From the IMG/VR virus record IMGVR_UViG_3300034104_005687, positions 248,001-312,000 of that record: 64,000 bases of DNA. One strand, written 5' to 3'. A program made the position numbers and the translations under genes. A model generated the notes under the pieces. It searched no databases, had not been told where the DNA came from, and was given only the letters and a program-made list of their open reading frames with translations. Shown piece after piece: positions 31,981-50,101 of this stretch; position 1 is the first letter of the stretch, and every line of letters begins with the position of its first letter.

Positions 31981-32757
31981 ATGACAGATCACTACGCCAC
32001 ATTGGGTGTTTCCAAAACTGCCACCGCTGACGAGATCAAACGAGCATTTCGCAAGCTGGCCAGTCAGCACCACCCTGACAAAGGTGGCGATACCGCAGCA
32101 TTTCAAAAAATACAGGCTGCATATGACACACTGGGCGACGCAGCCAAACGAGCTGCCTACGACAACCCCCCAGCACAACACAACTTTTCAAACTTTGGCG
32201 GTGCACAGTTCAATGACATATTTGGTCAGATGTTTGGCGGCGGTGGGTTTCCAGGGTTTAATCAAACACGTCGCAATCATGTGCGTGTGACGCTGTGGAT
32301 AACACTGCATGATGTTGCCACCGGAGGTGCCAGAACAGTGAGTCTAGACACAGCACAAGGTGCCAGTGCTGTGGAGATCAACATTCCTGTGGGCATTGAA
32401 GACAACGACAATGTACAGTATGCAGGCATAGGACCTGGTGGCACTGACTTGGTCGTGACCTTCAAGATTCGCCCAGATTCTCAATGGCAGCGTCAGGGTC
32501 AAAATCTCATTCAAGAACAGCGTGTGAATGTGTGGGATTTAATCACTGGCGGGTCTGTTCAAATCACTGACATTTTGAACAACCAATTGCAGATTACCAT
32601 TCCGGTGGGTACACAACCGGGCACTATGTTGCGTGTGCGAGGACGTGGTCTTCCCAACTCGCAAGGGCAAACCGGAGACATGTTTGTGAGAGTACATGCA
32701 GTATTGCCCCCCAAAATTGCTCCAGAAATACTGGAAGCAATCCAAAAGTATCGCTAA
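31981..32757 (+). CDS. dnaJ: DnaJ/CbpA-type co-chaperone (J domain + G/F region + C-terminal domain, no Zn finger)
   Basis: 'DHYATLGV', HPD motif, 'AYDTLGD..KR..YD', C-terminal 'GRGLP...GDMFV'. Confidence 0.9.
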   Translation: MTDHYATLGVSKTATADEIKRAFRKLASQHHPDKGGDTAAFQKIQAAYDTLGDAAKRAAYDNPPAQHNFSNFGGAQFNDIFGQMFGGGGFPGFNQTRRNHVRVTLWITLHDVATGGARTVSLDTAQGASAVEINIPVGIEDNDNVQYAGIGPGGTDLVVTFKIRPDSQWQRQGQNLIQEQRVNVWDLITGGSVQITDILNNQLQITIPVGTQPGTMLRVRGRGLPNSQGQTGDMFVRVHAVLPPKIAPEILEAIQKYR

Positions 32758-32802
32758 TTTATTTGCGATGTGTTACAATAACAGTTAGGTTAACTTTTTA
32801 CT

Positions 32803-35073
32803 ATGTCCATGACAAACAACTCCGAAATTGAAAGCATTGTTGAACAAGCCGTTGAAATTGCTCGCGACAAAAAACATGAATTTGTTATCACCGAGCACTT
32901 GCTGTTGGCCATGATACGGTATCAGCCGTTTCGCAAACTACTGGACAAATTTGGCACAGACACTGAGCACATGGAGGTCGAGGTTGACACATATCTTGGT
33001 GGTCTGACCAACATTGTGACTTCAGCAGAAAACATCCAGCCCAGAAAAACACAGGCTCTGGAACGCATTTTCAATCGAGCCAATGTGCAGGCCATGTTTA
33101 CTGGCCGACGCACACTGACCACTGGCGACTTGTATCTCAGCATCATGAGTGAGAGCAACAGTCATGCACATTATTTCTTGCTGAAATACGGTGTGAAGAA
33201 AACAGAATTCATTGACTTCTGGCAGAAAAACTACACTGCTGCCGAAGGCAAACTCAGCAATACACAAGCCACAGAAATCCTGGAAGAGTACTGCATAAAC
33301 CTCAGTGCCAAGGCCAAAGCCAATCAGCTGGAGCCCATGATTGGCAGAAGCAAAGAAGTACAGGAAATGATCACTGTGCTGGCTCGCAAGTTCAAGGCCA
33401 ACGTGCTGATGGTGGGCGATCCTGGTGTGGGCAAGACTGCTATTGTGGAAGGCTTGGCCCAGGAAATTGTGGCTGGTCGAGTGCCTGCGTTTATCAAGGA
33501 TCATGAAGTATGGGGCTTGGAAATTGGTTCACTGTTGGCCGGATCTAAGTATCGCGGTGACTTTGAAGAAAAACTCAAGTCTGTGATTGCTGCACTGGAA
33601 AGCAGAAAGAACTGTATTTTGTTTGTGGACGAAGCACACACCATGAAAGGTGCAGGAGCCAGTTCCAACAGCAGCCTGGACTTTGCCAACATGCTGAAGC
33701 CTGCTATCACCAAAGGCAGCTTGAAAGTGGTGGCTTCAACTACCTGGGAAGAATACTATGAAAGCTTTGAAAAAGACCGTGCTCTTATGCGACGTTTCTA
33801 TCGCTTGTCGATTGATGAACCGGATACTCTCACTACCGAACAAATTCTCATTGGTTTGTCGCCCCGGCTCGAACAGTTTCACAATGTTCTCATTGATACC
33901 GAAGCCATTACGGGCGCAGTGGAGTTGGCCAACCGATACATCCATGATCGCAAAAACCCAGACAAGTCGATTGATCTCATTGATGCAGCATGTGCTCGGG
34001 AACGTGTCAAAGACGCAGGTACAGTTACAATTACAAAATCCATGATTGAACAACAGCTGAGTCGTGTGGCTGGTGTGCCTGTGGACAAACTGCAAAATGA
34101 ACGCAGTGCCAAAATTGTGGAACTGGAAGGCAATATCAAACAACGACTATATGGGCAAAATTCAGCTGTGGACACTGTGTTGGAACGTGTGTACATCAGC
34201 TTTGCCGGCATCGGCAATGAGAGCAAGCCCATGAGCAGTTTCTTGTTCCTGGGACCCACAGGCACAGGCAAAACAGAATTGGCCAAAGCATTGTCCAACA
34301 ATCTAGACATGCACTTGTTGCGATACGACATGAGTGAGTATCAGGAACGTCACTCAGTAAGCAGTTTGATTGGTGCGCCACCAGGATATGTGGGCTTTGA
34401 AGATGGCAACATCGGCGGCGGCAAACTGATCTCAGACATCAGCAAGCATCCGTTCAGCATTATCTTGTTTGACGAGATTGAAAAAGCTCACCCCGATGTC
34501 ACCAATATCTTGTTGCAGATGCTGGACGAAGGACACATCACTGGCAGCAACGGCAAAAAAGTCAGTTGCAAAAACACCATCATCATCATGACATCCAACC
34601 TGGGTGCACGTGACAGTGAAACCAATGCCATTGGCTTTGGTTCACAAGAAAAAACAGGCGAAGACGAACGAGCCATGAAAGAGTTTTTCAAGCCCGAGCT
34701 GCGAAATCGTATTGATGCTGTGTGCAAGTTTGTGAAACTGGACACACTGGCCATCAAGAAGATTGTGGTAAAGTTTGTGGATGAACTCAAAGCCAGCTTG
34801 GCACCCAAGAACATCAGACTGAATCTTAGCGAAGCAGTGATTGATTACTTGGCAGTCAAAGGATACGACAGCAAGATGGGCGCTCGACCATTGAGTCGCA
34901 AAATTGACGAAATCATTCGTGTGCCGTTGAGCAAGAAGATCTTGTTTGAACGTTTGAGCGACTGCACAGTCAACGTGGATATTCAAAACGACACAGCAGT
35001 GTTTGATGTAGAAGTTGCAGTTCAATCAGGAGTAAATCATGACGGTATCATTGTTGTCAACACTGAAAACTGA
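32803..35073 (+). CDS. clpA: ATP-dependent Clp protease ATP-binding subunit ClpA
   Basis: Clp N-domain 'HEFVITEHLLLA', two AAA+ modules (GDPGVGKT; GPTGTGKT), 'GAPPGYVGF', IGF loop; 756 aa with no ClpB M-domain. Confidence 0.92.
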   Translation: MSMTNNSEIESIVEQAVEIARDKKHEFVITEHLLLAMIRYQPFRKLLDKFGTDTEHMEVEVDTYLGGLTNIVTSAENIQPRKTQALERIFNRANVQAMFTGRRTLTTGDLYLSIMSESNSHAHYFLLKYGVKKTEFIDFWQKNYTAAEGKLSNTQATEILEEYCINLSAKAKANQLEPMIGRSKEVQEMITVLARKFKANVLMVGDPGVGKTAIVEGLAQEIVAGRVPAFIKDHEVWGLEIGSLLAGSKYRGDFEEKLKSVIAALESRKNCILFVDEAHTMKGAGASSNSSLDFANMLKPAITKGSLKVVASTTWEEYYESFEKDRALMRRFYRLSIDEPDTLTTEQILIGLSPRLEQFHNVLIDTEAITGAVELANRYIHDRKNPDKSIDLIDAACARERVKDAGTVTITKSMIEQQLSRVAGVPVDKLQNERSAKIVELEGNIKQRLYGQNSAVDTVLERVYISFAGIGNESKPMSSFLFLGPTGTGKTELAKALSNNLDMHLLRYDMSEYQERHSVSSLIGAPPGYVGFEDGNIGGGKLISDISKHPFSIILFDEIEKAHPDVTNILLQMLDEGHITGSNGKKVSCKNTIIIMTSNLGARDSETNAIGFGSQEKTGEDERAMKEFFKPELRNRIDAVCKFVKLDTLAIKKIVVKFVDELKASLAPKNIRLNLSEAVIDYLAVKGYDSKMGARPLSRKIDEIIRVPLSKKILFERLSDCTVNVDIQNDTAVFDVEVAVQSGVNHDGIIVVNTEN

Positions 35074-35710
35074 AAGTCGAGACCGACTGTATTTTGATCA
35101 GTGGCAGTATGCGTTTTCTTTTTGGTTGAAAGAAGCGCACACACTCAGACATAGATCTGTTGCTGCACTAGATCACTATGTTGGTGACAGAATGTCATGG
35201 GCACACTGGGAAGAACGGTACACAGCAAAAGTAGTTTCCGATCTAAGAATCGTTCTGGATTTTGTCAACCATATTGCACAGCCGTTCAAGCTGACTGTGA
35301 GCGGGCACTGGGCTTCGATCTATACCAACGATCCTGACATTGCTGACGATTTAATTGCGCAGTGTCCTTTTACCAAACAACACCGGATCAAACAGGCTGT
35401 GGTAGATCGGCCTCGTGACACTGTGTTGCTGTTGGAGCCCACACATCAGTTTCGCAGTTACTTTAAGAGTCAGAAATTTCCTGGGGCCAAAATATCTGCT
35501 TTACAAGATTTTTTTACAGCGCAAGGCAACGATATAAAACCCAGTATTGCCATGCAACAGTTCTTGAAAGGTACTCGGCACGGCAATCACTGGATTCCAG
35601 ATCACTACTATGTGGACTACAATGACCCAGTGTATGCTACCATGTTGGCATTGATCATGCCCAGAGCTTTCAGAAAGACTGTGCCCATTGTTCAGCGTAT
35701 AAATACTTGA
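35039..35710 (+). CDS. Hypothetical protein (223 aa)
   Basis: Clean ORF overlapping the end of clpA. Confidence 0.65.
   Translation: MTVSLLSTLKTESRDRLYFDQWQYAFSFWLKEAHTLRHRSVAALDHYVGDRMSWAHWEERYTAKVVSDLRIVLDFVNHIAQPFKLTVSGHWASIYTNDPDIADDLIAQCPFTKQHRIKQAVVDRPRDTVLLLEPTHQFRSYFKSQKFPGAKISALQDFFTAQGNDIKPSIAMQQFLKGTRHGNHWIPDHYYVDYNDPVYATMLALIMPRAFRKTVPIVQRINT
35698..35705 (+). promoter_or_regulatory. T4-type late promoter (TATAAATA)
   Basis: Exact T4 late consensus 7 nt before ATG 35713. Confidence 0.65.
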
Positions 35711-36692: not shown

Positions 36693-38162
36693 ATGACCAC
36701 AATTGTAATCATGCCTGGCGGCTTTCACCCATTTCATGCAGGACATGCTGCATTGTATCAAAGTGCGCAACAAACTTTTCCCGATGCTGAAGTGTATGTT
36801 GCTGCCACCAACGATACCAGTTCACGACCTTTTCCGTTTGCTGTAAAAGAAAAGCTGGCTCGATTAGCCGGAGTCGATACAGGTCATTTTGTACAAGTCA
36901 AATCACCGTTTAGAGCAGAAGAAATTACCGCCAAGTTTGATCCACAAAAAGATGTGTTGATCTTTGTACGCAGTGAAAAAGACGCAGCACAACCGCCACA
37001 ACCTGGTGGTGTCAAAAAAGACGGGTCGCCTAGCTACTTGCAGCCTTTGTTGGGTGCTCGAAAGCTAGAACCATTTGCAAAACATGCCTACATGGCATAC
37101 TTGCCCACTGTGGAGTTTGGTCCTGGCATGACGTCGGCCACTGAGATTCGTAGTGCATGGCCCCGGCTAAACGAAAAACGCAAAACAGCTCTTGTGATGA
37201 GCCTGTACCCTAAAACGCAAACGAACCCTAAGTTGGCACAAACTGTGGTCAAACTGTTGGACACAGCATTAGGTGTAGTAGATGAGAGTGCGCTGGATAA
37301 CCTTCCACGCCCAAACAAACGTAATCAATTCAAGAGTCTACACAAACAAAGAAAACAACGTGGACTAGACGAGCAAGGTGTGGCGGAAGGCGTTCCTCAA
37401 CCTGGTAAATCATCTGGCAAACCTATATCCTGGATTGATCCTACCAAAGTTGTAACAGAATATCTAACGCTAGATGAGATATTCAAGTCAGTATCAGGCA
37501 TACCATACTATAACAATGTTGTAACAGATAGAGATAATAAAGACTTTACTTGGGGAGTAACTAAAAGAGTAATTCAATATGCAAAAGAATTAGTCATACG
37601 ACCCGATGCCTATAAAAACTGGCCTCCTATAATAGTTTTAGATGGCAAATTACAAGACGGGGCACATCGCATATCCACTATATACTTGATGCAACAAAGA
37701 GTTCAGCCAAATAACCCAATTTGGAAAAACGCTAAACTAAAAGTAGAATTTGGTACATCAGATAATGTAAAGCAAGGTGTGGCGGAAGGCAACGATGATA
37801 TCTGGGGACCGCAAGGAAACTTTGCTGGAGATATCAAAATAGATGTTGGCACAGCAAGCATGAAAAAAATACAAGCTGGTGATACTGTAAAGTATTTTGG
37901 AGAAACAGCACAAGTAATTGAACTAGATCCAGACAAAAACTATGCTCGAATCTCAGCCAATGGCAAGACTCTGAATGTGCGTTTATCTGACTTAAAACAG
38001 TTAGGTCGAGGTGTAGGCGAAAACCAAGGTTGGGCTGCTACCTTTACCAACGAAGACGACTACATAGAAGAAAAGTGGAGCAGCAAGTACAAAAACAGCA
38101 TCAACTGTGCTGCACCACGAGGATTCAGTCAACGTGCTCACTGTGCTGGCCGCAAAAAATAA
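36693..38162 (+). CDS. Modular protein: HxGH nucleotidyltransferase + ParB/Srx-like cassette + SH3-like module + basic Cys tail
   Basis: 'PGGFHPFHAGH' and 'SATEIR'; 'PPIIVLDGKLQDGAHRI' lies between two QGVAEG repeats. Confidence 0.7.
   Translation: MTTIVIMPGGFHPFHAGHAALYQSAQQTFPDAEVYVAATNDTSSRPFPFAVKEKLARLAGVDTGHFVQVKSPFRAEEITAKFDPQKDVLIFVRSEKDAAQPPQPGGVKKDGSPSYLQPLLGARKLEPFAKHAYMAYLPTVEFGPGMTSATEIRSAWPRLNEKRKTALVMSLYPKTQTNPKLAQTVVKLLDTALGVVDESALDNLPRPNKRNQFKSLHKQRKQRGLDEQGVAEGVPQPGKSSGKPISWIDPTKVVTEYLTLDEIFKSVSGIPYYNNVVTDRDNKDFTWGVTKRVIQYAKELVIRPDAYKNWPPIIVLDGKLQDGAHRISTIYLMQQRVQPNNPIWKNAKLKVEFGTSDNVKQGVAEGNDDIWGPQGNFAGDIKIDVGTASMKKIQAGDTVKYFGETAQVIELDPDKNYARISANGKTLNVRLSDLKQLGRGVGENQGWAATFTNEDDYIEEKWSSKYKNSINCAAPRGFSQRAHCAGRKK
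37372..37390 (+). repeat. 19-bp repeat AGCAAGGTGTGGCGGAAGG, copy 1
   Basis: Exact match to the copies at 37771, 45990 and 46344. Confidence 0.95.
37771..37789 (+). repeat. 19-bp repeat AGCAAGGTGTGGCGGAAGG, copy 2
   Basis: 399 bp (133 codons) after copy 1. Confidence 0.95.
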
Positions 38163-39162: not shown

Positions 39163-42100
39163 ATGAACCTCCATGAGTTAGATTCCTACAACCTTGCAGA
39201 TGCAGTAAAATTCCACAATCGCCTTAACCCGCGGTTGTGGGACAAAACTGAACATCTGTTGCCCGAAGTACACAACAAACTGCTGGAAATAGCAGCCGAT
39301 TTTCAAGAATTTTTGGGTGTGCCTGATCTAGACGTAGTGGATGTCACAGTGTCAGGATCCAATGCAGCCTACAGTTATACCCCACACAGTGACATTGACC
39401 TGCATCTTGTGGTGCAAATGCCAGAGCAAAACAGCGAAGTATTTCAAGAACTTTTCAACGCCAAAAAATATCAGTACAACGATGAACACGACATACGCAT
39501 AGGGGGTGCTGATGTTGAACTCTATGTTCAACCTGCGGATCAAAAACATCATAGTCTAGGAATCTACAGTGTCAAAAACAATGACTGGGTCCAGGTACCA
39601 CGCAGACGCAAAATAGAACTAGACGACCAGTGCGTGGCTCATAAAACTGAAGATCTGGCAGCCAGGATTGATCAAGCTGTGGCATCCGGCAGCGAAGAAA
39701 CCATGCAGCGTTTGTGGGACAAAATTAAGACCATGCGTCAGACTGGGCTAGAGCAAGCCGGCGAGTTTGGCTGCGATAACTTGGTATTCAAAATGCTGCG
39801 TCGTTCTGGACACATCGAACGTTTAACGCAAGCCAAGACACAGGCTCATGATCGTGAGCTCAGTCTCACAGAAAAGAAAAAACGCAAGAAGGCCAAAAAG
39901 AAATTTACCTATGGTGCGTTTGGTGGCTGGTTCTATCCAGGCTACAACTTTGGCGCAGGCGAAACCGGTGATGCTGGTGGCGGAGACGGCGGTGGAGAAA
40001 GTGTACGCGAAGTTGATTCAGGCATTGCACAAGGCAGCGCCATTGGTGACGCTGGTGCACAAAGCACATGGGACGGGGTAAGTCCTGACACTGACGAATA
40101 TCTCAGTGAAGAAGCCGAAGCCGAAAGCATTGTGCGTGATTTCATTAGAGACACTGCTCGCCGACTGAACATTCAGAAACTACCGCGTGTGCGACTACAC
40201 AATGATGACAGCTGGAGCGAAAATGCCGGCAGCTTTGGCAGATACGTACCTGAAACACACGAACTACATGTGAACATGGCCGATCGCCACATCATGGACA
40301 TATTGCGTACCACTGCACACGAATTGGCACATTGTAGACAGCACGAACTGTCGCCGTTGCCTGCTGATGCTGGCAACACTGGCAGTCGTTGGGAAAATCA
40401 AGCACATGCCACAGCTGGTGTGATCATGCGTGATTATGCTGATGCACATCCAGAAATGTTTGACAAATCTGCTGTAACTGAAAGCTCAGGTTACATTCCC
40501 ACTGACGCAGAAAAGAACGATCCACGCTTTGTGATGGCCTTGAGTCCAGATGTTCGTCCAGGCGCAACAGGCAAGAATGCCAACAAGATGGCGTTGAGGA
40601 CCAATGCACAAGGTCAGCCACAATTGGCCAAGACCAATGGCCTAGTAGAAAGCCTGCGTCGAGAGTTTGCTCTCCTAGAGGATGAATTTCTAGGCGAAAT
40701 CAAAATGACCAGCAAGAATCTGCGAGCTGAAGCCGCCAAGACTGGTGCTATAGCTGGCATGGAATTTGAAATGATTGTGCCCAACACTGAAGGCAACGAT
40801 GACGGTGACTTGGAACCCGACTATGACGCAGACCAACGCTGCCGTAGCATAGATGATGCTGTGGAGTTTTTCTATGACGGCGACTACAATGGCCGTAGAG
40901 ATGTTGAAAACCTACGTGCAAGAATGAACAACGATTTCCAGGAATGGCGTGATGATAAAATTGGCAATGATTGGGATACGGATGGGGATGATTATGTGCG
41001 TGAGTGGGTTGCCAACAATGTAGACGAATCAGAATGGAACAACAATGAAGATGATCCTGAAGCTTCGCGTGAAGAAAAATTAGACAACTTTGCTGCTAAT
41101 GTTTACAATGATCCCGGCAGTAATTACCATCAACAAGCATTTGATGAGTTCCGAGAAGAAAATCAAGACTCATATGACGAAAGTGACTGGTTAGACGCTG
41201 AAGACCTAGATCGCATGAGCGGTGTTGAAAACGCCTATGATATTTCTTGGCCGCACTGGACCAGCGGTGGCGGCGGTGGCGAAGCCAGTATTGAAGATGT
41301 AGCACAAGAGTTTGAAAATGCCATAGGCCGTGACGTTCGAGCCAGTGGCAGCTATCATTCAGGACGAGTACAAAGACCCAGCCCTACACAACAACACTAT
41401 GTGGTCGAGCCCGATGGCAGTTTGGAGCCGGATGATACCAATGATCAAGGCCTGGAGTTTGTAAGTCCGCCCCTGCCCATTGACGATATACTAAGTGACT
41501 TGAACAAAGTCAAGGCCTGGGCCAAAGAATATGGCTGCTATACCAACGACTCAACAGGCTTGCACATCAACATCTCAGTGCCCAACTACAGCAGAGAAAA
41601 CTTGGACTTTGTAAAGTTAGCATTGTTAATGGGCGACGAGTATATCCTGGACTTGTTTGGTCGTGTTGGCAATACCTACGCTAAGTCAGCCATGAAGCTG
41701 GTCAAGGAAAAAGTACGTGAAAATCCAGATGCAGCAAAACAGTTGCTGGACAAGATGAAGGGTAACTTGGATGCACTTGCTACCAAGGCCATCCACTCAG
41801 GTATTACCAGCAAGTACACCAGCATCAACACCAAGGACGGACACATTGAATTCCGCTCACCTGGTGGTGACTGGCTGGATGACAACTTTGACAAGATTGA
41901 AAACACCCTGTTACGATTCACAGTGGCCATGAGTGCGGCACTGAATCCGGATGCTTATCGTCAAGAGTATCAAAAGAAACTTTACAAATTGTTGACTGCG
42001 GACCAAAAGGATTCAGACACAATCAAGTATTTTGCACAATATGCTGCTGGTGAGCTACCCAAGGCTGCCTTGCGTAGTTTTGTTAAGCAAGCACAACTAG

Positions 42101-43389
42101 AGCGCAAGGTAAAACGCGGCGAAACAATCAATCAAAAAATGTGGTGGAGCGTTACCAATCCCCCGCAAAGTTCTGCCGGTATAGAAGTTGTTGCTACCTC
42201 TAAAGAAGAAGCCATTGCCCAAGCCCTGGGACCAGATGGCTATCCTGGCTGGGCCAACACACGACAATCAGTTGTGGCCAAGCCTTTGCGTCCATTTGAA
42301 GACACCAGTTTGGACAAACCTTTTGTATGGAAAGTTCAAGGCACTGATTCTCCATATCAAAGACAAGGTATAGAAGTTGTTGCTTTTAGTGAGCTCGAAG
42401 CAATGCAAAAAGCCAGACGACGATGGAATTTAAACATAGGTACAACCCCAGAACAAGAATTCTTTAGAACCAACCGTTGGATTGCTACCACTGTTCGTCC
42501 TGCTGAAGAACCTGAACAAGATCAAGACAGTGCAACAACTGGCAACTGGGGAGCTTATGTAACGGTGCTTGATCGGTTTGCAGAATTCAACGACCAAGGT
42601 ACCACCCGTACTAGGAGATTCAGAGACCAGGCAGCAGCTGAGTCCTGGATACAGAATTATAATATAAGGTACCCTAGAAATGATCTTGAATTGACTGCTC
42701 GAGAGCTTGAACCTTCTGAACAAGCGCCGCAGTCTGGCCGTGCTGCCACAAGCCCAACAGGACAGTGGAAAATGGTTGATGGTTTAAATCGTGAAGTATA
42801 TCGTTTCCGTCCTGCAGAGAATACTAGAGCCAAAGCCAATGAGTTAGCCTCACTATGGGCACGGGAAAACAACTTTGATGGCAATTATCAAGTTGAACCT
42901 GCGGAAGATACTGCACAAACAGATACGAACCCACTAACACCAACAGGCTCTGGACCCTGGGAAGTAGCCAGCAGAAGCAACAATCAAGTTTATTACAACC
43001 CACCAAGCAGTAATCCTATTGAAGCAGAGTCACAATCAAGAACGTGGTTAAGACAAAACGATCACAACGAATCAGACTTTGAAGTACGAACTCGAGAAGG
43101 TGTTGGTGGCACAGACACAGCACAAGGTGGTATCATTGATATTGAACCAGATATATCACAATACAATGCACCACAAACACTGACCCGCCCTGGGCAAGAT
43201 CAGCAGGTGTTTACAGGCCAATGGAAAGTAACACTCGATGGCGAAGAGATTCATCGCTTTGGCGGCATTGGTAACAATCAAATGGATGCAAATCGTGTTG
43301 GCCGTGAATGGGCACGTAATCAAATACGTCAAGGATTATTATATCCTGCGGGCGATATCGAAGTCTTTCCAGTAATGGGAAATGCCTAA
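39163..43389 (+). CDS. Polyvalent protein: Pol-beta-type nucleotidyltransferase + HExxH metallopeptidase-like + amidoligase (COOH-NH2 ligase)-like + C-terminal repeats
   Basis: 'GSNAAY....SDIDLH'; 'AHELAH...E..A'; 'GMEFE', 'EPDGSL', 'GLEFVSP', 'TGLHIN', 'KYTSIN', 'IEFR'. Confidence 0.75.
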   Translation: MNLHELDSYNLADAVKFHNRLNPRLWDKTEHLLPEVHNKLLEIAADFQEFLGVPDLDVVDVTVSGSNAAYSYTPHSDIDLHLVVQMPEQNSEVFQELFNAKKYQYNDEHDIRIGGADVELYVQPADQKHHSLGIYSVKNNDWVQVPRRRKIELDDQCVAHKTEDLAARIDQAVASGSEETMQRLWDKIKTMRQTGLEQAGEFGCDNLVFKMLRRSGHIERLTQAKTQAHDRELSLTEKKKRKKAKKKFTYGAFGGWFYPGYNFGAGETGDAGGGDGGGESVREVDSGIAQGSAIGDAGAQSTWDGVSPDTDEYLSEEAEAESIVRDFIRDTARRLNIQKLPRVRLHNDDSWSENAGSFGRYVPETHELHVNMADRHIMDILRTTAHELAHCRQHELSPLPADAGNTGSRWENQAHATAGVIMRDYADAHPEMFDKSAVTESSGYIPTDAEKNDPRFVMALSPDVRPGATGKNANKMALRTNAQGQPQLAKTNGLVESLRREFALLEDEFLGEIKMTSKNLRAEAAKTGAIAGMEFEMIVPNTEGNDDGDLEPDYDADQRCRSIDDAVEFFYDGDYNGRRDVENLRARMNNDFQEWRDDKIGNDWDTDGDDYVREWVANNVDESEWNNNEDDPEASREEKLDNFAANVYNDPGSNYHQQAFDEFREENQDSYDESDWLDAEDLDRMSGVENAYDISWPHWTSGGGGGEASIEDVAQEFENAIGRDVRASGSYHSGRVQRPSPTQQHYVVEPDGSLEPDDTNDQGLEFVSPPLPIDDILSDLNKVKAWAKEYGCYTNDSTGLHINISVPNYSRENLDFVKLALLMGDEYILDLFGRVGNTYAKSAMKLVKEKVRENPDAAKQLLDKMKGNLDALATKAIHSGITSKYTSINTKDGHIEFRSPGGDWLDDNFDKIENTLLRFTVAMSAALNPDAYRQEYQKKLYKLLTADQKDSDTIKYFAQYAAGELPKAALRSFVKQAQLERKVKRGETINQKMWWSVTNPPQSSAGIEVVATSKEEAIAQALGPDGYPGWANTRQSVVAKPLRPFEDTSLDKPFVWKVQGTDSPYQRQGIEVVAFSELEAMQKARRRWNLNIGTTPEQEFFRTNRWIATTVRPAEEPEQDQDSATTGNWGAYVTVLDRFAEFNDQGTTRTRRFRDQAAAESWIQNYNIRYPRNDLELTARELEPSEQAPQSGRAATSPTGQWKMVDGLNREVYRFRPAENTRAKANELASLWARENNFDGNYQVEPAEDTAQTDTNPLTPTGSGPWEVASRSNNQVYYNPPSSNPIEAESQSRTWLRQNDHNESDFEVRTREGVGGTDTAQGGIIDIEPDISQYNAPQTLTRPGQDQQVFTGQWKVTLDGEEIHRFGGIGNNQMDANRVGREWARNQIRQGLLYPAGDIEVFPVMGNA

Positions 43390-43931
43390 TGCGAGCTAAT
43401 GAGTTTGTTGTTGAAGCACACGTTCCACCTATACGTGATCAGATTCGTGCTGACGTGAAAAAGAATGGTCCTGGTGAATATTTTGTGCGTGTAACTGCTG
43501 TAGACCAACTGGGATTTAGTGCCAGGCAAAAGTTTGGTCGATCGCCCGACATGGATGATCCCAACTTTGATGTAGACTACATTGGTGCAGGCCGAGGACG
43601 TCCTGCACTTTGGTTCTACCCAGTTAACGAATATCTCAAAAACAAAGACTTGTACGCAACAGAAAATCCTTATGTTTGGCTAGTTAAACTAAAAGACACA
43701 GCTTGGCTACAACCTGCTCGTCGTGGTGATTCAGGTGTGGCTAATCCGCCGCAGGGTAAACAACGTGTGGGTATTATGCGTATGAGTAATCCTCCGGCTG
43801 CTATATTCTTCCAGCCAGGATTTGATGTTGTAGGACGTTACTATGACTATGCAGGACAACACAAGCGTCACGGCGAAGTCAAGGGTCGTCCTGATCCTAG
43901 CTGGTTTGATCGTGTTAGAGGTCAATCATGA
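43389..43931 (+). CDS. Hypothetical protein with MRAxEF leader (putative internal head protein)
   Basis: Starts MRANEFVVE. Confidence 0.65.
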   Translation: MRANEFVVEAHVPPIRDQIRADVKKNGPGEYFVRVTAVDQLGFSARQKFGRSPDMDDPNFDVDYIGAGRGRPALWFYPVNEYLKNKDLYATENPYVWLVKLKDTAWLQPARRGDSGVANPPQGKQRVGIMRMSNPPAAIFFQPGFDVVGRYYDYAGQHKRHGEVKGRPDPSWFDRVRGQS

Positions 43932-44410
43932 GAGCACAAGAGTTTGTAGGCGAAAAAGTTTCTCCAGAAACTGCACAAGACGGTTTTCTTGATCAGCAGC
44001 TGGTCAACAACGGAGAATGGACAATCAAAGCCACGGGCGATACACGACGCTATGGTGACACAGTTGCCAATGTGTTGCATGTAAAGGTGTTTGATACCAA
44101 CACCAATGAAGAACTGGCCTGGGTCGATTTTCTTGTAAAAACTCGTAGAGAAGATGGAGAGCGATACATGGAGTCAGCATACACTTATGTAAATCCTCGA
44201 TACCGCGGCAAGGGACTGGCCAAGTTAATGTATCAGTATGCCAATAGCTTGGGCAACGACATTCAACCAAGTCAAATGCAAACTGACATGGGCAAAGGTA
44301 TGTGGAAAGGACTCAACAAGGCTGTGAAACAACCTCCTTTGCTGCCTACTGTGTCTGTGCCCGAGAAACCGCCCAGTGTGTGGCAGCGTTTGCGAAAGGC
44401 CGTGGTATGA
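43928..44410 (+). CDS. GNAT-family acetyltransferase with MRAxEF leader
   Basis: Acetyl-CoA motif A 'YVNPRYRGKGLAKLMY' and 'QTDMGKGMW'; starts MRAQEFVGE. Confidence 0.8.
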   Translation: MRAQEFVGEKVSPETAQDGFLDQQLVNNGEWTIKATGDTRRYGDTVANVLHVKVFDTNTNEELAWVDFLVKTRREDGERYMESAYTYVNPRYRGKGLAKLMYQYANSLGNDIQPSQMQTDMGKGMWKGLNKAVKQPPLLPTVSVPEKPPSVWQRLRKAVV

Positions 44411-44955
44411 GAGCAAATGAATTTACACAACCACGGGCTGCTGGCTGTATAATAGTAGCTGAGGACACAGGTCGTTGGTGTTTACAGCAACGCAGTGACA
44501 CAGTGAGTGATCCTGGCCTGTGGTCAACCTGGGGTGGCGGCTGTGAACTAGGAGAAACACTGGAACAATGTGTGCGTAGAGAGCTGGCAGAAGAAGGTGG
44601 ATATGTAGGCCCACTCCAGTTGGAACCACTCAGCAGCAACAGTCAGTATGCCACCTTTATTGGTCGTGTGCCACATGAATTTGAACCCAAAATCAATCGT
44701 GAATCAAAAGACTGGTGCTGGTGTGAGTCAGATCAACTGCCTGAACCCATGCATCCAGGACTTGCACAAGCGTTGAGTGAAAACTTTGCTGACGGCAAAG
44801 TAAAAGGAAAAAGCAGACCTGGGCGTGTAAAACGTGCAGGTGCCAGCTGCAATGGAAGTGTAACAGATCTAAGAGCAAGAGCCAAACGTGCATCAGGAGA
44901 AAGAGCCCGTATGTACCACTGGTGTGCCAACATGAAATCAGGACGTAAAAAATAA
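44407..44955 (+). CDS. Nudix hydrolase with MRAxEF leader and a basic C-terminal module
   Basis: Nudix box 'GGCELGETLEQCVRRELAEEGG'; ATG 44407 is coupled to the previous stop. Confidence 0.85.
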   Translation: MRANEFTQPRAAGCIIVAEDTGRWCLQQRSDTVSDPGLWSTWGGGCELGETLEQCVRRELAEEGGYVGPLQLEPLSSNSQYATFIGRVPHEFEPKINRESKDWCWCESDQLPEPMHPGLAQALSENFADGKVKGKSRPGRVKRAGASCNGSVTDLRARAKRASGERARMYHWCANMKSGRKK

Positions 44956-44999
44956 GAGGCGGTCTCCTGTAACTTAAACTTATTTCAAAAACAAACAGC

Positions 45000-45445
45000 A
45001 CAAGGTTGGCGGGCCGAATATAATACCGCTGGTGAATCCGCTCTGATGTGTGGCGGTAGCCAATTCTGTCCGCTGTTAACAGGCTTCTGTTCTCTACCCC
45101 TGTGCCGCAGGGATGCCCAGAGAAAACGTCTGCCCTGTGGCAGTAGCGTTAGAACAGTCGTACGGGTTGAGCGTAGCGCAAGCTAGCTTATTGTCAGATA
45201 CTGTCATAGATCCAATTGACACCGAGGGATCTTTAAAAGTCGTAGCAGGTAGGGTAAGGTACAGAGCCCAGAACAGTAGACAACACAAATACCTGCTGTC
45301 ATAAGTGTGGCTGAGCAACTCAGCGAATGTCTTGGCGCCCTGTTTCAGGGTGTCGTATGGCGTCACAATCTAGCGAAATATCTCTTGTGTATTTGTATAA
45401 ACAAAGCGAGCTGACAAGCGAAGCTTAGGATTGCGTAGCAATCCG
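45000..45445 (+). ncRNA. Unidentified, highly structured non-coding element (candidate large ncRNA and/or ssDNA structure)
   Basis: Core of the longest gap in the window (44956-45466), with at least nine readable stems, some with G-U pairs and GCAA loops. Confidence 0.6.
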
Positions 45446-45466
45446 ATCAGACTAAATACAAATACT

Positions 45467-46597
45467 ATGCTATTCAACGAACTCTTTAACTCTAGCCCTG
45501 AACCCCTTGCTGAGGGTGTATTGGATAACCCTGGGCAAGAACACAGCCCGGTTGCGTCTGCTATTATTCGTCGTATCTTGCTACAGCGTACAGACTTATT
45601 GAGCAAGTACGGTCCTGAGCGAGTGGGTGCAGCAGTTGACGATGTTGCTGACTTTGTGGGTGACACGGACGAAATTGGCAGTAGCGATGTATCCGGTTGG
45701 GTTCGCCAAGTTGAACAGATGTTGGGCAACATGACAGAAGCTGGATACAAGCGTGATGCGTATCAAAGAGATTACGACAATAGTGTTGCAGGCATGAGCA
45801 AACGTGACTCTTACGCCTACAGTCAAGACGGTGGTGGCAACGATGAACGCCACGATCTAGATCCCACTGAGTGGTACATTGTCAAAGATGGCAAAATGTT
45901 CAAAGCAACTGTGTATCCTACCCAAGTACAGTCAGCAATGTCACAGGGCTTTAGTCCCAGCAGAGAAGAAGCCAAAGCCAGAGCTGACCAGCAAGGTGTG
46001 GCGGAAGGCTCAGATTTTTTTGCAGGTAGCAAATTTGCCGACGAAGATGGCAATACATTTAGTGTAGAAAAAATAATAGCCTTTGCCAAAAAAAATCCAA
46101 AATATTTTCATAAAGATTTTCCATTATCAAAAATAAAACATGATCTTTCATGGTGGCAAGGAAATAAAGAAAGAATGATGAATGCTGATACAAGTTTTCC
46201 ACTGTTAGTAATTCAAAATGATGATGGACATCTTGGTGTTGCTGATGGGCTTAATCGCATGAAAAAAGCAGTTGATGTTGAGAAGAAAACAACTATTGAT
46301 GTTTATCTAGTTCCAAAAAAAGATATTATGAAGTTCTCTGAAAAGCAAGGTGTGGCGGAAGGTGATATCGGTCAGTTAGAAAAAGATATTGCTGCTGCAC
46401 CAGTTGAGCCTATTGCCAACATGGAAGGCTCCAACGAAAAGATTGGCAATATGGATGCTGATGCGTTTGATTCTGCCATGGCACGCCTTAAAAAGCTAGC
46501 AGGTGCAGGGCCAATGAAAACTGTGTGGGATCCTACCAAACGTGTTTACCGCAACATGCCCACAGCAGTTCAACCTCCTCAACAGCCCAAAAAATGA
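45467..46597 (+). CDS. Modular putative internal head protein with a ParB-like cassette
   Basis: CTAAATA upstream; 'MLFNELF...LAE'; 'FPLLVIQNDDGHLGVADGLNRMKKA' lies between two QGVAEG repeats. Confidence 0.65.
   Translation: MLFNELFNSSPEPLAEGVLDNPGQEHSPVASAIIRRILLQRTDLLSKYGPERVGAAVDDVADFVGDTDEIGSSDVSGWVRQVEQMLGNMTEAGYKRDAYQRDYDNSVAGMSKRDSYAYSQDGGGNDERHDLDPTEWYIVKDGKMFKATVYPTQVQSAMSQGFSPSREEAKARADQQGVAEGSDFFAGSKFADEDGNTFSVEKIIAFAKKNPKYFHKDFPLSKIKHDLSWWQGNKERMMNADTSFPLLVIQNDDGHLGVADGLNRMKKAVDVEKKTTIDVYLVPKKDIMKFSEKQGVAEGDIGQLEKDIAAAPVEPIANMEGSNEKIGNMDADAFDSAMARLKKLAGAGPMKTVWDPTKRVYRNMPTAVQPPQQPKK
45990..46008 (+). repeat. 19-bp repeat AGCAAGGTGTGGCGGAAGG, copy 3
   Basis: Exact match. Confidence 0.95.
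46344..46362 (+). repeat. 19-bp repeat AGCAAGGTGTGGCGGAAGG, copy 4
   Basis: 354 bp (118 codons) after copy 3. Confidence 0.95.
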
Positions 46598-46860
46598 GAG
46601 CCAGCGAGTTCATTGGCACCGTTGCCAAACGTAATGCTCGCGTAGGCTCCAGACATCAACGTGGGCACACTCCGCTGCCCAGATATCGTTACAGCAATGA
46701 TCAAAAATTGGATGAACTCAGTTTCCTGGGTTCTGAATGCACCAAGGACTGTTCAGGACATCGTGCTGGCTACGACTGGTACAAGAAACGTGGCTATGAA
46801 CCAGCCAGCTGGAGCAACAGCTTCAACCGTGGTGCTGCCTTGGCTGCTGCTGGCAAATAA
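46594..46860 (+). CDS. Small protein with MRAxEF leader
   Basis: Starts MRASEF; 'CTKDCSGHRAGYDW' module follows LDE. Confidence 0.65.
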   Translation: MRASEFIGTVAKRNARVGSRHQRGHTPLPRYRYSNDQKLDELSFLGSECTKDCSGHRAGYDWYKKRGYEPASWSNSFNRGAALAAAGK

Positions 46861-46893
46861 CAACTCACAATCACAGCTAGCATACATACGTGC

Positions 46894-47733
46894 ATGATTG
46901 ATATTTGCACTGTTGTATTCCAACAAGAAATTCCTGTGCTGAAATTACAGGCTCAAAGCATAGATTTGTACTGCCACGACATTGGCGTAAACTGCATTTA
47001 TGTTGTGGTCAACGATCACGACTCAGTTGTGCAACTGATTGATCCTGCATGGTGGGGCAGTATGAGCCATTTGGTTCGAGTCATACCCAGATCTGTGTTT
47101 TCAACTGACTTTGTGGACAATGGATGGGTCAGTCAGCAAGTACTCAAACTACTGGTGCCCGCCATGAGCTACAATCAGTGTACCATGGTATTGGATGCCA
47201 AAACTGTATTTGTTCAACCTGTGACATTGTCACAACTGTTTGATTCCACAGGCAAGATTGCCACAGGAACCCTGGAGCTGTATCCAGTGTTTGATGCTGC
47301 TAGACAAATTGTCAATGCCACATACAACATTGACCTACAGCATCAAATTGGACCCGGCGGCGTGCCGTTTGTGTTCAACAACAACACAGTGAGAATGATG
47401 ATTGCAGATACCACTGCACTGACTCAGCAGAACTTCCCTGAATGGTTTCAATCGCAAGGCATGCTCACAGAGTTTGTGCTGTATTCTGGTTATGTGCAAT
47501 ACCGACATGGTTCATTGACCAGTTTGTACACTACAGATCAACCATCAATACGGCCGGTAAACATGTGTCACAGTGAGGTTGCATTAGCGGATCGTATACT
47601 AGATCATATGCAGCAGGCCACCACAGTGAGCATACACCGAAACGCCTGGCCGCAGCTCACTGTGAGTCAGCAACAACAGTATCGTGATTTGCTGATCGAC
47701 AAAGGAATTACTCAAGCATGGGCACTAAAATAA
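46894..47733 (+). CDS. Glycosyltransferase-related (DUF6492-like) protein
   Basis: 'GWVSQQVLKL', 'VLDAK', 'TEFVLY'; same pattern as 50098..51114. Confidence 0.55.
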   Translation: MIDICTVVFQQEIPVLKLQAQSIDLYCHDIGVNCIYVVVNDHDSVVQLIDPAWWGSMSHLVRVIPRSVFSTDFVDNGWVSQQVLKLLVPAMSYNQCTMVLDAKTVFVQPVTLSQLFDSTGKIATGTLELYPVFDAARQIVNATYNIDLQHQIGPGGVPFVFNNNTVRMMIADTTALTQQNFPEWFQSQGMLTEFVLYSGYVQYRHGSLTSLYTTDQPSIRPVNMCHSEVALADRILDHMQQATTVSIHRNAWPQLTVSQQQQYRDLLIDKGITQAWALK

Positions 47734-48242
47734 ACGCACTGTGCATGGTTGCACACCCTGATGACTGTGTGATTTTTGCCTATAGTTATATTCACAATCA
47801 TCCAGAAATGAATTGGACCATTGGATACCTGACCTATACTGAACAAGACCCACGAGGTGCAGAGCTTGCTGCTTTTTGGCGCCGCCGAGGTATTGATACT
47901 GTGTTCTTGGGATTTGAAGATCATTGGCACGACAATGAACAAAAACAATTCACTAGATGGACAGAGGAACGTGCCGAACGAGCCTGTTGGGAGTTGGCAA
48001 AGAATTTTGATCTGGTGTTGACACATGATGAATTTGGCGACTACGGACACATACATCATGTGTTGGTACACAATTCAGTGCAATGGCATCCGCGTCTGGT
48101 CACATTTGCGCCACCAGGCCAAGGTACCACATACACTGTGCCTGCAGGTACATACAACCTCAATGAGTTGCCCATGCACGGTGAAATTGTGCAAGGCTTT
48201 CATCACAGTGAACACCGCAACAGTTACAAGGAAACAAAATGA
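47718..48242 (+). CDS. PIG-L/LmbE-family deacetylase
   Basis: 'VAHPDD' and 'THDEFGDYGHIHH'. Confidence 0.8.
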   Translation: MGTKINALCMVAHPDDCVIFAYSYIHNHPEMNWTIGYLTYTEQDPRGAELAAFWRRRGIDTVFLGFEDHWHDNEQKQFTRWTEERAERACWELAKNFDLVLTHDEFGDYGHIHHVLVHNSVQWHPRLVTFAPPGQGTTYTVPAGTYNLNELPMHGEIVQGFHHSEHRNSYKETK

Positions 48243-49051
48243 AATTAATGGTAGCAGGATGTAGTTATTCAGCAGTGAGTCAGCGCATGCCTGGCACCAG
48301 CTGGAGTGAGTTGCTGGCTCAACAACTAGGCTGGGACCTGACGAATCTAGCACGACAGGGTTGCAGCAACGGGGGCATACGTGTGCAGATTGATGAAATA
48401 CTGAGGCAACGTCCTGACTTTGCTGTGATCACTCCCACGTTCTGGGACAGAATGGAAATACCAGCTTCGGCAGCACCATTTGATTGGAAAAAAAGCACAG
48501 GTGGATGGAATCCAGAAATACAGCGTCACTTGCAAGATCGCACATTAAAAAATGGCTATAATCGTGACGATGGCATCAACAACGTCAACTACGGCAACAA
48601 CAACTACAACATGATCTGCGAGACTATCTACACCTTAGCAGAAAACTTTGATCATCCTTATCGTTCAGGGCTGATCAGCAAAACATCTCAGACTGCTGTA
48701 CGACACTACATAGATGGTATATATGATTCAGAATGGAAACGGCAACAAGACGAATGGATTGTTAAGTCGGGCATTTTTGAACTGCATCATGCTGGCATTG
48801 ACTTTTTGTTTGTGCCTGTGTTGTTGTGGCCCTTTGATCCTGCGTTGGGGGCAACTCAATGGCGCAAATCAATCAGTACTGCTGTGCCTGACCGCAACGT
48901 GATGTTTGACGAACGAGAATCAATATTGCCGTTGTGTGGCAACAATCCGTTTGAAGGAGAAGATCCTGGTTACCATTCGGGTGCCCGGGGCCAACAACTC
49001 ATTGCTGACAACTACTATCGCAGAATCACACAAGATTTTGGATTAGCGTAA
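48239..49051 (+). CDS. SGNH-hydrolase-like protein
   Basis: 'AGCSYS...SWSELLA...NLARQGCSN', C-terminal 'YH....Q..IA'. Confidence 0.55.
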   Translation: MKLMVAGCSYSAVSQRMPGTSWSELLAQQLGWDLTNLARQGCSNGGIRVQIDEILRQRPDFAVITPTFWDRMEIPASAAPFDWKKSTGGWNPEIQRHLQDRTLKNGYNRDDGINNVNYGNNNYNMICETIYTLAENFDHPYRSGLISKTSQTAVRHYIDGIYDSEWKRQQDEWIVKSGIFELHHAGIDFLFVPVLLWPFDPALGATQWRKSISTAVPDRNVMFDERESILPLCGNNPFEGEDPGYHSGARGQQLIADNYYRRITQDFGLA

Positions 49052-50101
49052 ATGTGGCTCAATCATGCGCTGCATTTCGGAGTATTTTTCTTGACGAAAC
49101 TCATATAGCCTGTGATGATTGTGGTCCAGGATGGATCGAGCTTGCAGTAGTATTTTCTGATGGTCTTGTTGACTCAACCATTTTACTTGCTCAAATGCAG
49201 CTTGCCAACGATCAATGTCACGTTCAATGCTGTCATAGCTTTCGTCCAGTATGGAATCAAAAGTCTTGAATCCAAAGGATCGAAGTTTTTTCAACCAGTG
49301 TGCTACGCCAAAGTGCACAAACAGTCTACGAGCATGTAGGCATTTGCCAATCTTTTCTGCCATGAGATAGCAGTCTCCAGATCCCAGTGTTTCTACCAAG
49401 ATGCTGTAGTATGTGCGATTGTATATTTCCCAGGGTTCGATGCTGCTGATAGAGTTGTCAAGATGTTCTCTTACCTCCCATGCAGGATCTAGATTTGGAC
49501 TCACATAAGGCCACACAATTTTTTGATCAGGAAATTGTTGTTGTACTTTGTCAGTGGTTTCGGTGATGTTGCCACCTACAAAAATGTCTCGGTAGGTAGC
49601 AATACTGTGATTCAGCAGTCCTGATTTTTCAAGACTCAGCATCACATAGTCTCGATGTTCTCTGCGTGTGCCACACAAACAGTCAAACAAATAAGGACGT
49701 GACAGTGGAAAATCATCACGTGGTGGGTTCCACTGTAGGAAAGTAAAACTCCACCATGGACGATACACTGTACGATGAGTCAAAGTTTCAGAAGCATACA
49801 GTCCTGCTACACTCAACAGCCAGTTGTTGGCATCGGTGGTATCAATCCAGTTGATCAACTCTGTCTGCGATCTAAACTCAATATCAGTAAACAACACCAG
49901 GTCAAACTGACTCAATTGTAGATTTTCAAATTCTGGTTTGTAAGAAAATTCTGTGGGTCGATTAAAGTACACTGGCAATACTGCAATCTTGGTAGGCTGT
50001 GCCAGTGCAGTGGCTAGATCCACTATCTGTGGATAATCAAAACCCCAATCTATGGCTTGGTAGCCCGGGCTATAAATTTTGAGTTGCGAGAAATCTGTCA
50101 T
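49043..50101 (-). CDS. Hypothetical protein, possibly glycosyltransferase-like (GT-B)
   Basis: 352 aa; 'SILVET...AEKIGK...F.TF..ILDESYD' pattern; lies in a glycan gene cluster. Confidence 0.45.
   Translation of the reverse strand: MTDFSQLKIYSPGYQAIDWGFDYPQIVDLATALAQPTKIAVLPVYFNRPTEFSYKPEFENLQLSQFDLVLFTDIEFRSQTELINWIDTTDANNWLLSVAGLYASETLTHRTVYRPWWSFTFLQWNPPRDDFPLSRPYLFDCLCGTRREHRDYVMLSLEKSGLLNHSIATYRDIFVGGNITETTDKVQQQFPDQKIVWPYVSPNLDPAWEVREHLDNSISSIEPWEIYNRTYYSILVETLGSGDCYLMAEKIGKCLHARRLFVHFGVAHWLKKLRSFGFKTFDSILDESYDSIERDIDRWQAAFEQVKWLSQQDHQKILLQARSILDHNHHRLYEFRQEKYSEMQRMIEPHLR

Follow-up and report, generated by a model that had tools for sequence, protein, structure and literature searches.

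A large polyvalent protein of an uncultured phage with nucleotidyltransferase, zincin and amidoligase modules and candidate prohead protease sites at its junctions

Proteins that are injected with phage DNA act before phage gene expression, and they therefore decide whether host defences are overcome. To our knowledge very few are known outside T4, P1, N4 and the phiKZ group. Here we analyse a candidate of this kind from an uncultured phage. It is encoded in a stretch of 64,000 nucleotides (the window), positions 248,001 to 312,000 of IMG/VR virus record IMGVR_UViG_3300034104_005687, where a single open frame of 1408 codons is found as an earlier note on the letters of this DNA had stated. That note had read the product as a polyvalent protein, joining a nucleotidyltransferase (NTase), a peptidase with an HExxH motif and an amidoligase, and had proposed that it is packaged in the head and processed into host-modifying enzymes (nucleotidylation, peptide tagging). 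We find that all three fold assignments hold, and we consider it probable that the protein is an effector polyprotein that is packaged in the head and processed by a protease.

The polyvalent proteins surveyed by Iyer, Burroughs, Anand, de Souza and Aravind in 2017 (PMC5512222) resemble the 1408-residue protein in several respects. They too are very large phage proteins in which unrelated catalytic domains are joined to a zincin-like peptidase, their domain make-up varies between relatives and draws on ADP-ribosyltransferase (ART), GNAT, deaminase and lysozyme-type modules, and entry into the host alongside the DNA is predicted for them. The premise of the earlier note, that combinations of this kind are already established for polyvalent proteins, stands in part. 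Such proteins do combine domains, but the survey mentions no amidoligase and has Pol-beta NTases only in proteins of conjugative elements (PMC5512222), and the NTase-zincin-amidoligase core is new to it. Profile searches of our protein found no LPD or MuF domains. The protein differs further in that junction sites of the gp21 type point to a prohead protease rather than to self-cleavage.

The second comparison is with the internal proteins IPI-III and Alt of T4. The gp21 protease of T4 cleaves after L/I-X-E, and the propeptide of Alt is seven residues long (PMC9026906); the capsid-targeting sequence is MKTYQEFIAE (PMC8442874). Our phage shares with T4 homologues of gp21 and gp23, short leaders ending in [LIV]-x-E (such as MRAQEFITE) with hypervariable enzyme cargo behind them, and an ART module of the Alt type in some homologues of the polyvalent protein. 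It differs in having many modules in one polyprotein of 1300-2000 amino acids with internal junctions of the cleavage type, whereas those of T4 are separate small proteins. The leader sequence differs as well, and targeting by the candidate leader is suggested by analogy. The polyprotein would correspond, in fused form, to the internal proteins and Alt of T4.

The ejection and inner-body proteins of phiKZ and SPN3US also come from giant phages, in which many head proteins are packaged and are processed after Glu by a gp21-related protease. These phages belong to another lineage and their cleavage motif is S/A-X-E, and the proteins are mostly not recognisable as multi-enzyme fusions.

Three enzyme modules in one polypeptide

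We have parsed the domains of the protein using AlphaFold models built on family alignments. The NTase, the zincin and the amidoligase are each supported by profile and fold evidence, and their catalytic residues are invariant. Profile searches with either half of the protein against PDB sequences gave no useful match. The features are collected in Table 1.

The NTase motif GS...SDIDLH lies at residues 65-81 (nucleotides 39355-39405), within a predicted fold of the Pol-beta type. The module matches phrog_36119 with an E value of 4.8e-46. Foldseek matches it to ANT(9), AadA, CdnE and MNT with E values of 1e-3 to 1e-1 and probabilities up to 0.99, VIA-align gives Z 7.7 to 2rff, and the model superposes with a root mean square deviation of about 2 Å on stand-alone 'nucleotidyl transferase domain' proteins of uncultured phages in BFVD. 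Among 48 aligned sequences G65, S66, D77, D79 and E119 are invariant, so that G[GS]-x(9-13)-D-h-[DE] and a third carboxylate are both present. The match to Pfam NTP_transf_2 (PF01909) falls below threshold (15.2 bits against a cut-off of 21), with the homologue P0026 scoring 21.0, and PADLOC and NCBIfam give only sub-threshold NTase hints (PDC-S09; MntA, E 0.05). The predicted fold is nearest to the ANT and MNT enzymes, which adenylylate small molecules or proteins.

The linker that follows contains the motif S-x-DGV-x-P-x-T-x-x-[FY]-L-x-E. Different homologues have between one and three copies in tandem of the form S-P-D-G-V-x-P-T-T-K-M-F-L-E-E, and every copy ends in hydrophobic-x-Glu (alignment A1).

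The peptidase motif HELAH is located at residues 386-390 (nucleotides 40318-40332) in a minimal zincin fold. H386, E387, H390 and E411 are invariant across the homologue alignment, and E411 is likely to be the third ligand of the zinc site. VIA-align gives Z 8.3-9.1 over about 100 residues to YbeY, SPRTN, Wss1 and selecase, and a 122-residue viral 'IrrE N-terminal-like' protein in BFVD superposes with a template modelling (TM) score of 0.82. No match to MPTase-PolyVal (PF18818), the family by which classical polyvalent proteins are recognised, was found in the 1408-residue protein, nor anywhere in the genome at E≤1. From its sequence and model the zincin appears to belong to another family, of IrrE, SprT or minigluzincin-like type.

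The amidoligase is the largest of the three modules. Its motifs run from GMEFEM (residues 532-537, nucleotide 40756) to EFRSPGGDW (residues 896-904, nucleotide ~41870), and it matches Pfam PF12224 (Amidoligase_2) with an E value of 1.3e-8 and 35.4 bits against a cut-off of 22. By VIA-align the model matches glutamine synthetases, which fill all of the top 50 places, with Z 9-10 over 170-190 residues. The ESM Atlas neighbours are Amidoligase_2 clusters. E534, E536, E749, D751, E765, H801, N803, E896 and R898 are conserved in the family alignment, from which the module is predicted to be catalytically intact. Amidoligase_2 enzymes form amide bonds with ATP, and Iyer and colleagues are said to have described the family in 2009 as glutamine-synthetase-like COOH-NH2 ligases. 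Our module shares with that family the above-threshold Pfam match, the catalytic fold of glutamine synthetase and the Glu, His and Arg residues. It differs in its location within a polyprotein and in a 115-residue acidic helical insert. The Asp/Glu-rich stretch seen in the earlier note is indeed present at residues ~540-700; in the model it forms a folded helical subdomain rather than a loose spacer. The usual partner genes of Amidoligase_2 are not seen adjoining the polyvalent gene.

The protein belongs to a large family. One search matched at least 1091 clusters at 90% identity, and when representatives at 50% identity were searched exhaustively there were 4032 matches, 1029 of them with E≤1e-30. 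The protein is therefore real and not a chance reading frame. No full-length counterpart was found in cultured phages, where the modules turn up only singly: cyanophages, Maribacter phages and Lak phages carry the NTase, whereas Atu_ph07, RsoM2USA and SCTP-2 carry the amidoligase. In the metagenomic homologues, hundreds in number, the order NTase-zincin-amidoligase is constant, and down to ~50% sequence identity none of the three enzymes departs from its set of catalytic residues. Around this core the family is variable. Extra cassettes enter near residue 497, within the second linker, and after the last repeat, and they include cytidine deaminase, GNAT, an Alt-like ART, GH19 with LysM, M23 with a peptidoglycan (PG)-binding module, M48 and U49. 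Relatives with 92-96% identity over residues 1-497 differ by entire cassettes. This variation strongly supports the modular, polyvalent nature claimed in the earlier note, and modules that degrade the cell wall (GH19 with LysM, M23 with PG-binding), together with the Alt-like ART, are as expected of injected proteins.

Junction sites, leaders and the prohead protease

The 1408-residue protein contains only eight [LI]xE sites in all. Five are kept in 91-100% of homologues: LHE at residues 3-5 (43 of 47), LTE at 235-237 (46 of 47), LVE at 494-496 (33 of 34), LLE at 504-506 (21 of 23) and LGE at 510-512 (26 of 26). VTE at 438-440 is kept as [LIVMF]xE in 31 of 34 (91%) and as strict [LI]xE in 26 of 34 (76%). 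All six conserved sites sit at the N-terminus, at domain ends or in linkers where the models have a predicted local distance difference test score (pLDDT) below 50. The earlier note had placed module boundaries near hydrophobic-x-Glu motifs, and the six that it named all exist. LTE, LVE, LGE and VTE are conserved, but LSE (314-316) is kept in only 25 of 44 homologues and VRE (281-283) falls in a stretch absent from most homologues, and the conserved LHE and LLE had been missed.

Related proteins place such sites at the same boundaries. In cyanophage S-CRM01 the NTase stands alone (g125), and its last residue aligns with L235. In 68 of 70 mutually distant proteins that start with the amidoligase module, [LI]xE-[IVL]-x-M is found within 45 residues. 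The cassettes at the residue ~497 hot spot are bracketed by sites of the [LI]xE type, and [LIV]xE lies no more than 12 residues away at 30 of the 36 distinct junctions after the last repeat, compared with a background of 12.5%. The linker segment EDEFLGE, just ahead of the amidoligase, is similar to QEFIAE, the core of the targeting sequence of T4, and by likeness to the Alt propeptide residues 1-5 could possibly be a short propeptide.

A protease of suitable type is encoded in the same virus record, which is 349 kb long with an estimated completeness of 97%. A gp21-family prohead protease (Peptidase_S77, PF03420) is found at C1:84747-85190 with 80.5 bits, where the cut-off is 27. The record also encodes a major capsid protein of the gp23 family (E 1.6e-97), 66-67% identical to those of the jumbo phages Vibrio 2.275.O, PA5oct and Phosso, and from its genes we take the source to be a T4-like jumbo phage. 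The capsid protein has L-K-E at residues 40-42, which may lie near the position of the cut in T4 gp23.

Three ORFs (open reading frames) directly downstream of the polyvalent gene begin with related leaders, MRANEFVVE, MRAQEFVGE and MRANEF, and each overlaps the stop of the preceding gene. A fourth MRA[NQ]EF ORF, of 123 amino acids, lies outside the window at C1:134261-134632; its leader MRAQEFITE is the closest match in the genome to the T4 targeting sequence. A repeat at the level of DNA was considered as the source of the shared leaders and rejected. The upstream DNA is not conserved and the codons differ, so MRA(N/Q)EF is conserved at the protein level only. In other phages that have the GNAT module or the basic tail of the third ORF as part of the polyvalent protein, the sequence at the junction is P-[VI]-M-T-E-[GS]-[LV]-x-E, and 63 of 70 stand-alone amidoligases start with M[RK]xx[QDENHK][LIFV]. 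Thus a given module can be part of a fusion, in which case there is an internal junction site, or have a gene of its own, in which case it bears a leader. A literature search found no paper on a capsid-targeting sequence in this phage group.

A module of ~140 amino acids beginning with AF(D/N)(Q/N)PYK.K.EKSEYGD is found inside the polyprotein as a hot-spot insert (P0006, P0103), at its C-terminus (P0020, P0058, P0065) and in a separate leader-bearing gene (L006:14127-15572). Cassette shuffling is clear in this instance.

On the reading that we favour, the polyprotein would be incorporated into the prohead along with the downstream proteins that bear leaders, three in number. The gp21 homologue would then cut after E5, E237, E440, E496, E506 and E512. 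The expected products are the NTase (~27 kDa), a fragment with the zincin (~22 kDa) and the amidoligase with the repeats (~101 kDa). The fragments would be ejected with the DNA, and would modify host or defence targets as infection begins.

A broader suggestion, on which we are divided and lean slightly towards doubt, is that T4-like jumbo phages of freshwater and elsewhere use a common 'cassette grammar' for injected effectors. Interchangeable modules bounded by [LI]-x-Glu would be either fused or encoded separately with an MR..(E/D)(F/L/I)..E leader. Were this true, sequence could be enough to list the effectors that thousands of uncultured jumbo phages package, and the NTase-zincin-amidoligase would be a conserved core with possibly new host-modifying chemistry. 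The family is large, widespread in lakes and absent from the survey of 2017. Provided that the rules for junctions and leaders hold, candidate enzymes of counter-defence (NTase, amidoligase, deaminase, GNAT, ART, NUDIX) could be catalogued with their help, and the leader could serve to tag foreign proteins for loading into jumbo-phage capsids, as the T4 targeting sequence does for T4.

Packaging, cleavage and the alternatives

The cultured relative Atu_ph07 (MF403008.1), whose virion proteome has been published (PMC6102473), encodes a gp21 homologue, gp204. Its gp196 (AUZ94978.1) is a homologue of the amidoligase module (34% identity, E 3e-28 to 4e-34), and mass spectrometry of the virions gave 14 unique peptides from it, a coverage of 30% (PMC6102473). 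The identities of gp196 and gp197 were fixed by matching computed masses of 57.93 and 87.3 kDa to the table entries, and mass and gene order together allowed 138 of the 140 listed virion proteins to be assigned to ORFs. Unlike the 1408-residue protein, gp196 stands alone as a protein of 500 amino acids and has no NTase, zincin or repeats. It opens with a leader of the MR type, after which come L-T-E and L-K-M. About 20 virion proteins of Atu_ph07 share a leader M[RK]W.QL.E that ends in an L-x-E of the gp21 type; the carriers include gp53-63 (39484-50592), gp43, 381, 408, 482, 487, 548, 561 and 672. Leaders and cleavage are not discussed in the virion paper (PMC6102473). For RsoM2USA the virion data comprise the ten strongest gel bands only, and are therefore uninformative on its homologue, ORF26.

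The head-packaged, processed polyprotein proposed in the earlier note thus gains real, though indirect, support from the gp21-family protease, from [LI]-x-E at the junctions, from the neighbouring leaders and from the presence of an Atu_ph07 module in the virion. The folds, the catalytic residues, the modular variation, the junction sites, the protease gene, the leaders and the place of gp196 in the virion are direct observations; that the 1408-residue protein is itself packaged, cut by gp21 and ejected, and what its substrates would be, is inference.

A number of observations weigh against this reading. The 1408-residue protein and its uncultured phage are known here from genes alone, and the gene lies ~200 kb away from the head genes, within a DnaJ/ClpB/NMNAT-like/NUDIX cluster. 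No convincing late promoter was found for it: the T4 late-promoter consensus TATAAATA occurs at 35698-35705, 3.4 kb upstream and ahead of the same-strand run of ORFs that includes the polyvalent gene, and of its 4 occurrences in the window and 15 in the genome none stands before the capsid gene. The protein itself starts with MNLHE (MN[IL]xE in the family) and not with an MR..EF leader. In Atu_ph07 the leader pattern M[RK]xx[QDE][LIF]x(1-2)E picks out 22 ORFs of which 19 are virion proteins (P ~3e-11), but it was devised after the virion list had been viewed, and the paralogues gp53-63 account for 11 of the 19. A looser pattern that had been set in advance gives 5 virion proteins out of 11 (P 0.055). 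The Atu_ph07 virions were purified with polyethylene glycol only, and the list includes some non-structural proteins (PMC6102473). Residues 513-1408 (40699-43389; 896 residues) contain no [LI]xE where 7.2 are expected (P ~6e-4), the strongest depletion of any ORF in the genome. Homologues retain 2-10 such sites (observed/expected 0.77), and we have therefore not relied on avoidance as a mark of exposure to the protease. Lastly, the zincin of the protein itself could be the processing enzyme in place of gp21.

An explanation built on that last point would have the polyprotein made after infection, left unpackaged in the cytoplasm and cut into enzymes by its own zincin. The HExxH motif and E411 are invariant, the zincin is placed between the other modules, autoprocessing by a metallopeptidase domain has been proposed for polyvalent proteins by Iyer et al. 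2017 (PMC5512222), and the gene has chaperone and nucleotide-enzyme genes as neighbours, not head genes. We nevertheless think it unlikely. The junction motif fits the specificity of gp21, and it is also carried by stand-alone modules and leader ORFs that have no zincin, virion proteins of Atu_ph07 among them. The cell-wall hydrolase modules of the homologues make sense only if they are delivered from outside, and the zincin does not match the MPTase-PolyVal family. Less probable still is a multi-domain enzyme that is never cut, whose NTase and amidoligase act sequentially on one substrate while the repeats serve as binding modules; nucleotide activation followed by amide ligation might, for example, give a modified metabolite, a wall component or a nucleic-acid modification. 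The order of the three modules, conserved in hundreds of homologues, would suit such an enzyme, as would the NMNAT-like and NUDIX genes that flank the polyvalent gene. Every module, however, also occurs alone in other phages, unrelated cassettes are inserted between the modules, and the linkers are long, disordered and carry conserved sites of the protease type. Nor does a peptidase have an obvious place in such a pathway.

The presence of a homologous module in the Atu_ph07 virion would also fit a mainly structural protein of the head interior, a scaffold or inner body in which the enzyme-like domains are relics, and the large size, the acidic helical insert and the repeat arrays might be seen in the same light. 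Against this, all three enzymes keep their catalytic residues without exception and the accessory cassettes are enzymes, and we regard it as very improbable. A head-packaged polyprotein cut by the prohead protease is the explanation that we prefer.

Gene neighbourhood, repeats and lake variants

Table 1. Features of the polyvalent gene and of the ORFs directly downstream. Nucleotide positions are those of the window.
Feature	Residues	Position	Strand	Basis or remark
Whole gene, 1408-aa protein (P0001)	1-1408	39163..43389	+	one open frame; 158.5 kDa, isoelectric point (pI) 4.8
Possible N-terminal propeptide MNLHE	1-5	39163..39177	+	ends in [IL]-x-E; E5 and L6 invariant
Pol-beta-type NTase core with ANT-like helical C-terminal domain	20-245	39220..39897	+	profile, fold
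Junction site 1, L-T-E	235-237	39865..39873	+	conserved in homologues (see text)
First linker	238-316	39874..40110	+	Lys/Arg patch KKKRKKAKKK, then Gly-rich disordered stretch; pLDDT 24-46
Minimal zincin metallopeptidase	317-433	40111..40461	+	fold, invariant residues
Second linker, disordered	434-512	40462..40698	+	sites VTE, LVE, LLE and LGE
Glutamine-synthetase-like amidoligase (Amidoligase_2)	513-985	40699..42117	+	profile, fold
Acidic helical insert in amidoligase	578-692	40894..41238	+	pI 4.05; pLDDT 85-94; helices H84-H198 of model
Two 'GIEVVA' small beta-beta-alpha-beta domains	993-1113	42139..42501	+	sequence repeats, model
Four 'G-x-W' small beta-beta-alpha-beta domains	1127-1407	42541..43383	+	sequence repeats, model
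180-aa ORF, leader MRANEFVVE		43389..43931	+	directly downstream of polyvalent gene
160-aa GNAT-like ORF, leader MRAQEFVGE		43928..44410	+	homologous to GNAT modules fused to polyvalent protein elsewhere
182-aa NUDIX hydrolase with basic Cys/His tail, leader MRANEF		44407..44955	+	tail is the polyvalent C-terminus in other phages

The stop codon of the polyvalent gene shares the sequence TAATG with the ATG of the next gene. The order DnaJ, ClpB, NMNAT-like, an ORF of ~300 amino acids, the polyvalent gene, DUF6492 and PIG-L is the same in two other contigs, of 343 kb and 93 kb. Scans for sigma-70 promoters and terminators gave no useful excess over shuffled controls. The DnaJ-like and ClpB-like chaperone genes lie just upstream at 31981-35073, and Clp proteins are encoded by Atu_ph07 too.

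The repeats described in the earlier note are confirmed, with GIEVVA units at residues 1006 and 1069 and G-x-W units at residues 1127, 1200, 1264 and 1352. All six are of one general type, and their number and type differ among homologues and among co-occurring lake variants. No family could be assigned to them: there was no Pfam match and no match to an Atlas feature, and the AFDB Swiss-Prot set gave only small-domain arrays of a generic kind, with TM below 0.1.

Near-identical DNA has been assembled in at least 24 metagenome runs of lake water. Contigs from four lake runs match the gene without differences, the sole break being at 40753-40780. This is a highly conserved coding stretch, AKTGAIAGMEFEM, at which related variants branch in the lake assemblies. 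An assembly chimera at the unitig break was considered and rejected, because the depth is equal on either side and there are full-length colinear homologues (69-75% identity). In contigs of two runs an in-frame block of 828 nucleotides is skipped or replaced (joint 42293->43122; residues ~1045-1320, repeats 2-5), and the block begins exactly where repeat 1 ends. From the branching contigs and this joint we conclude that the same lakes hold several cassette variants of the gene side by side.

Similar basic Cys/His tails are found on two otherwise unrelated enzymes of the window, at 36693-38162 (...C...HC.GRKK) and 44407-44955 (...HWCANMKSGRKK). The first of these is like NMNAT or a cytidylyltransferase, with the motif GGFHPFHAGH. 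Such a tail also closes the polyvalent protein in several other phages, and it may serve in DNA binding or in targeting.

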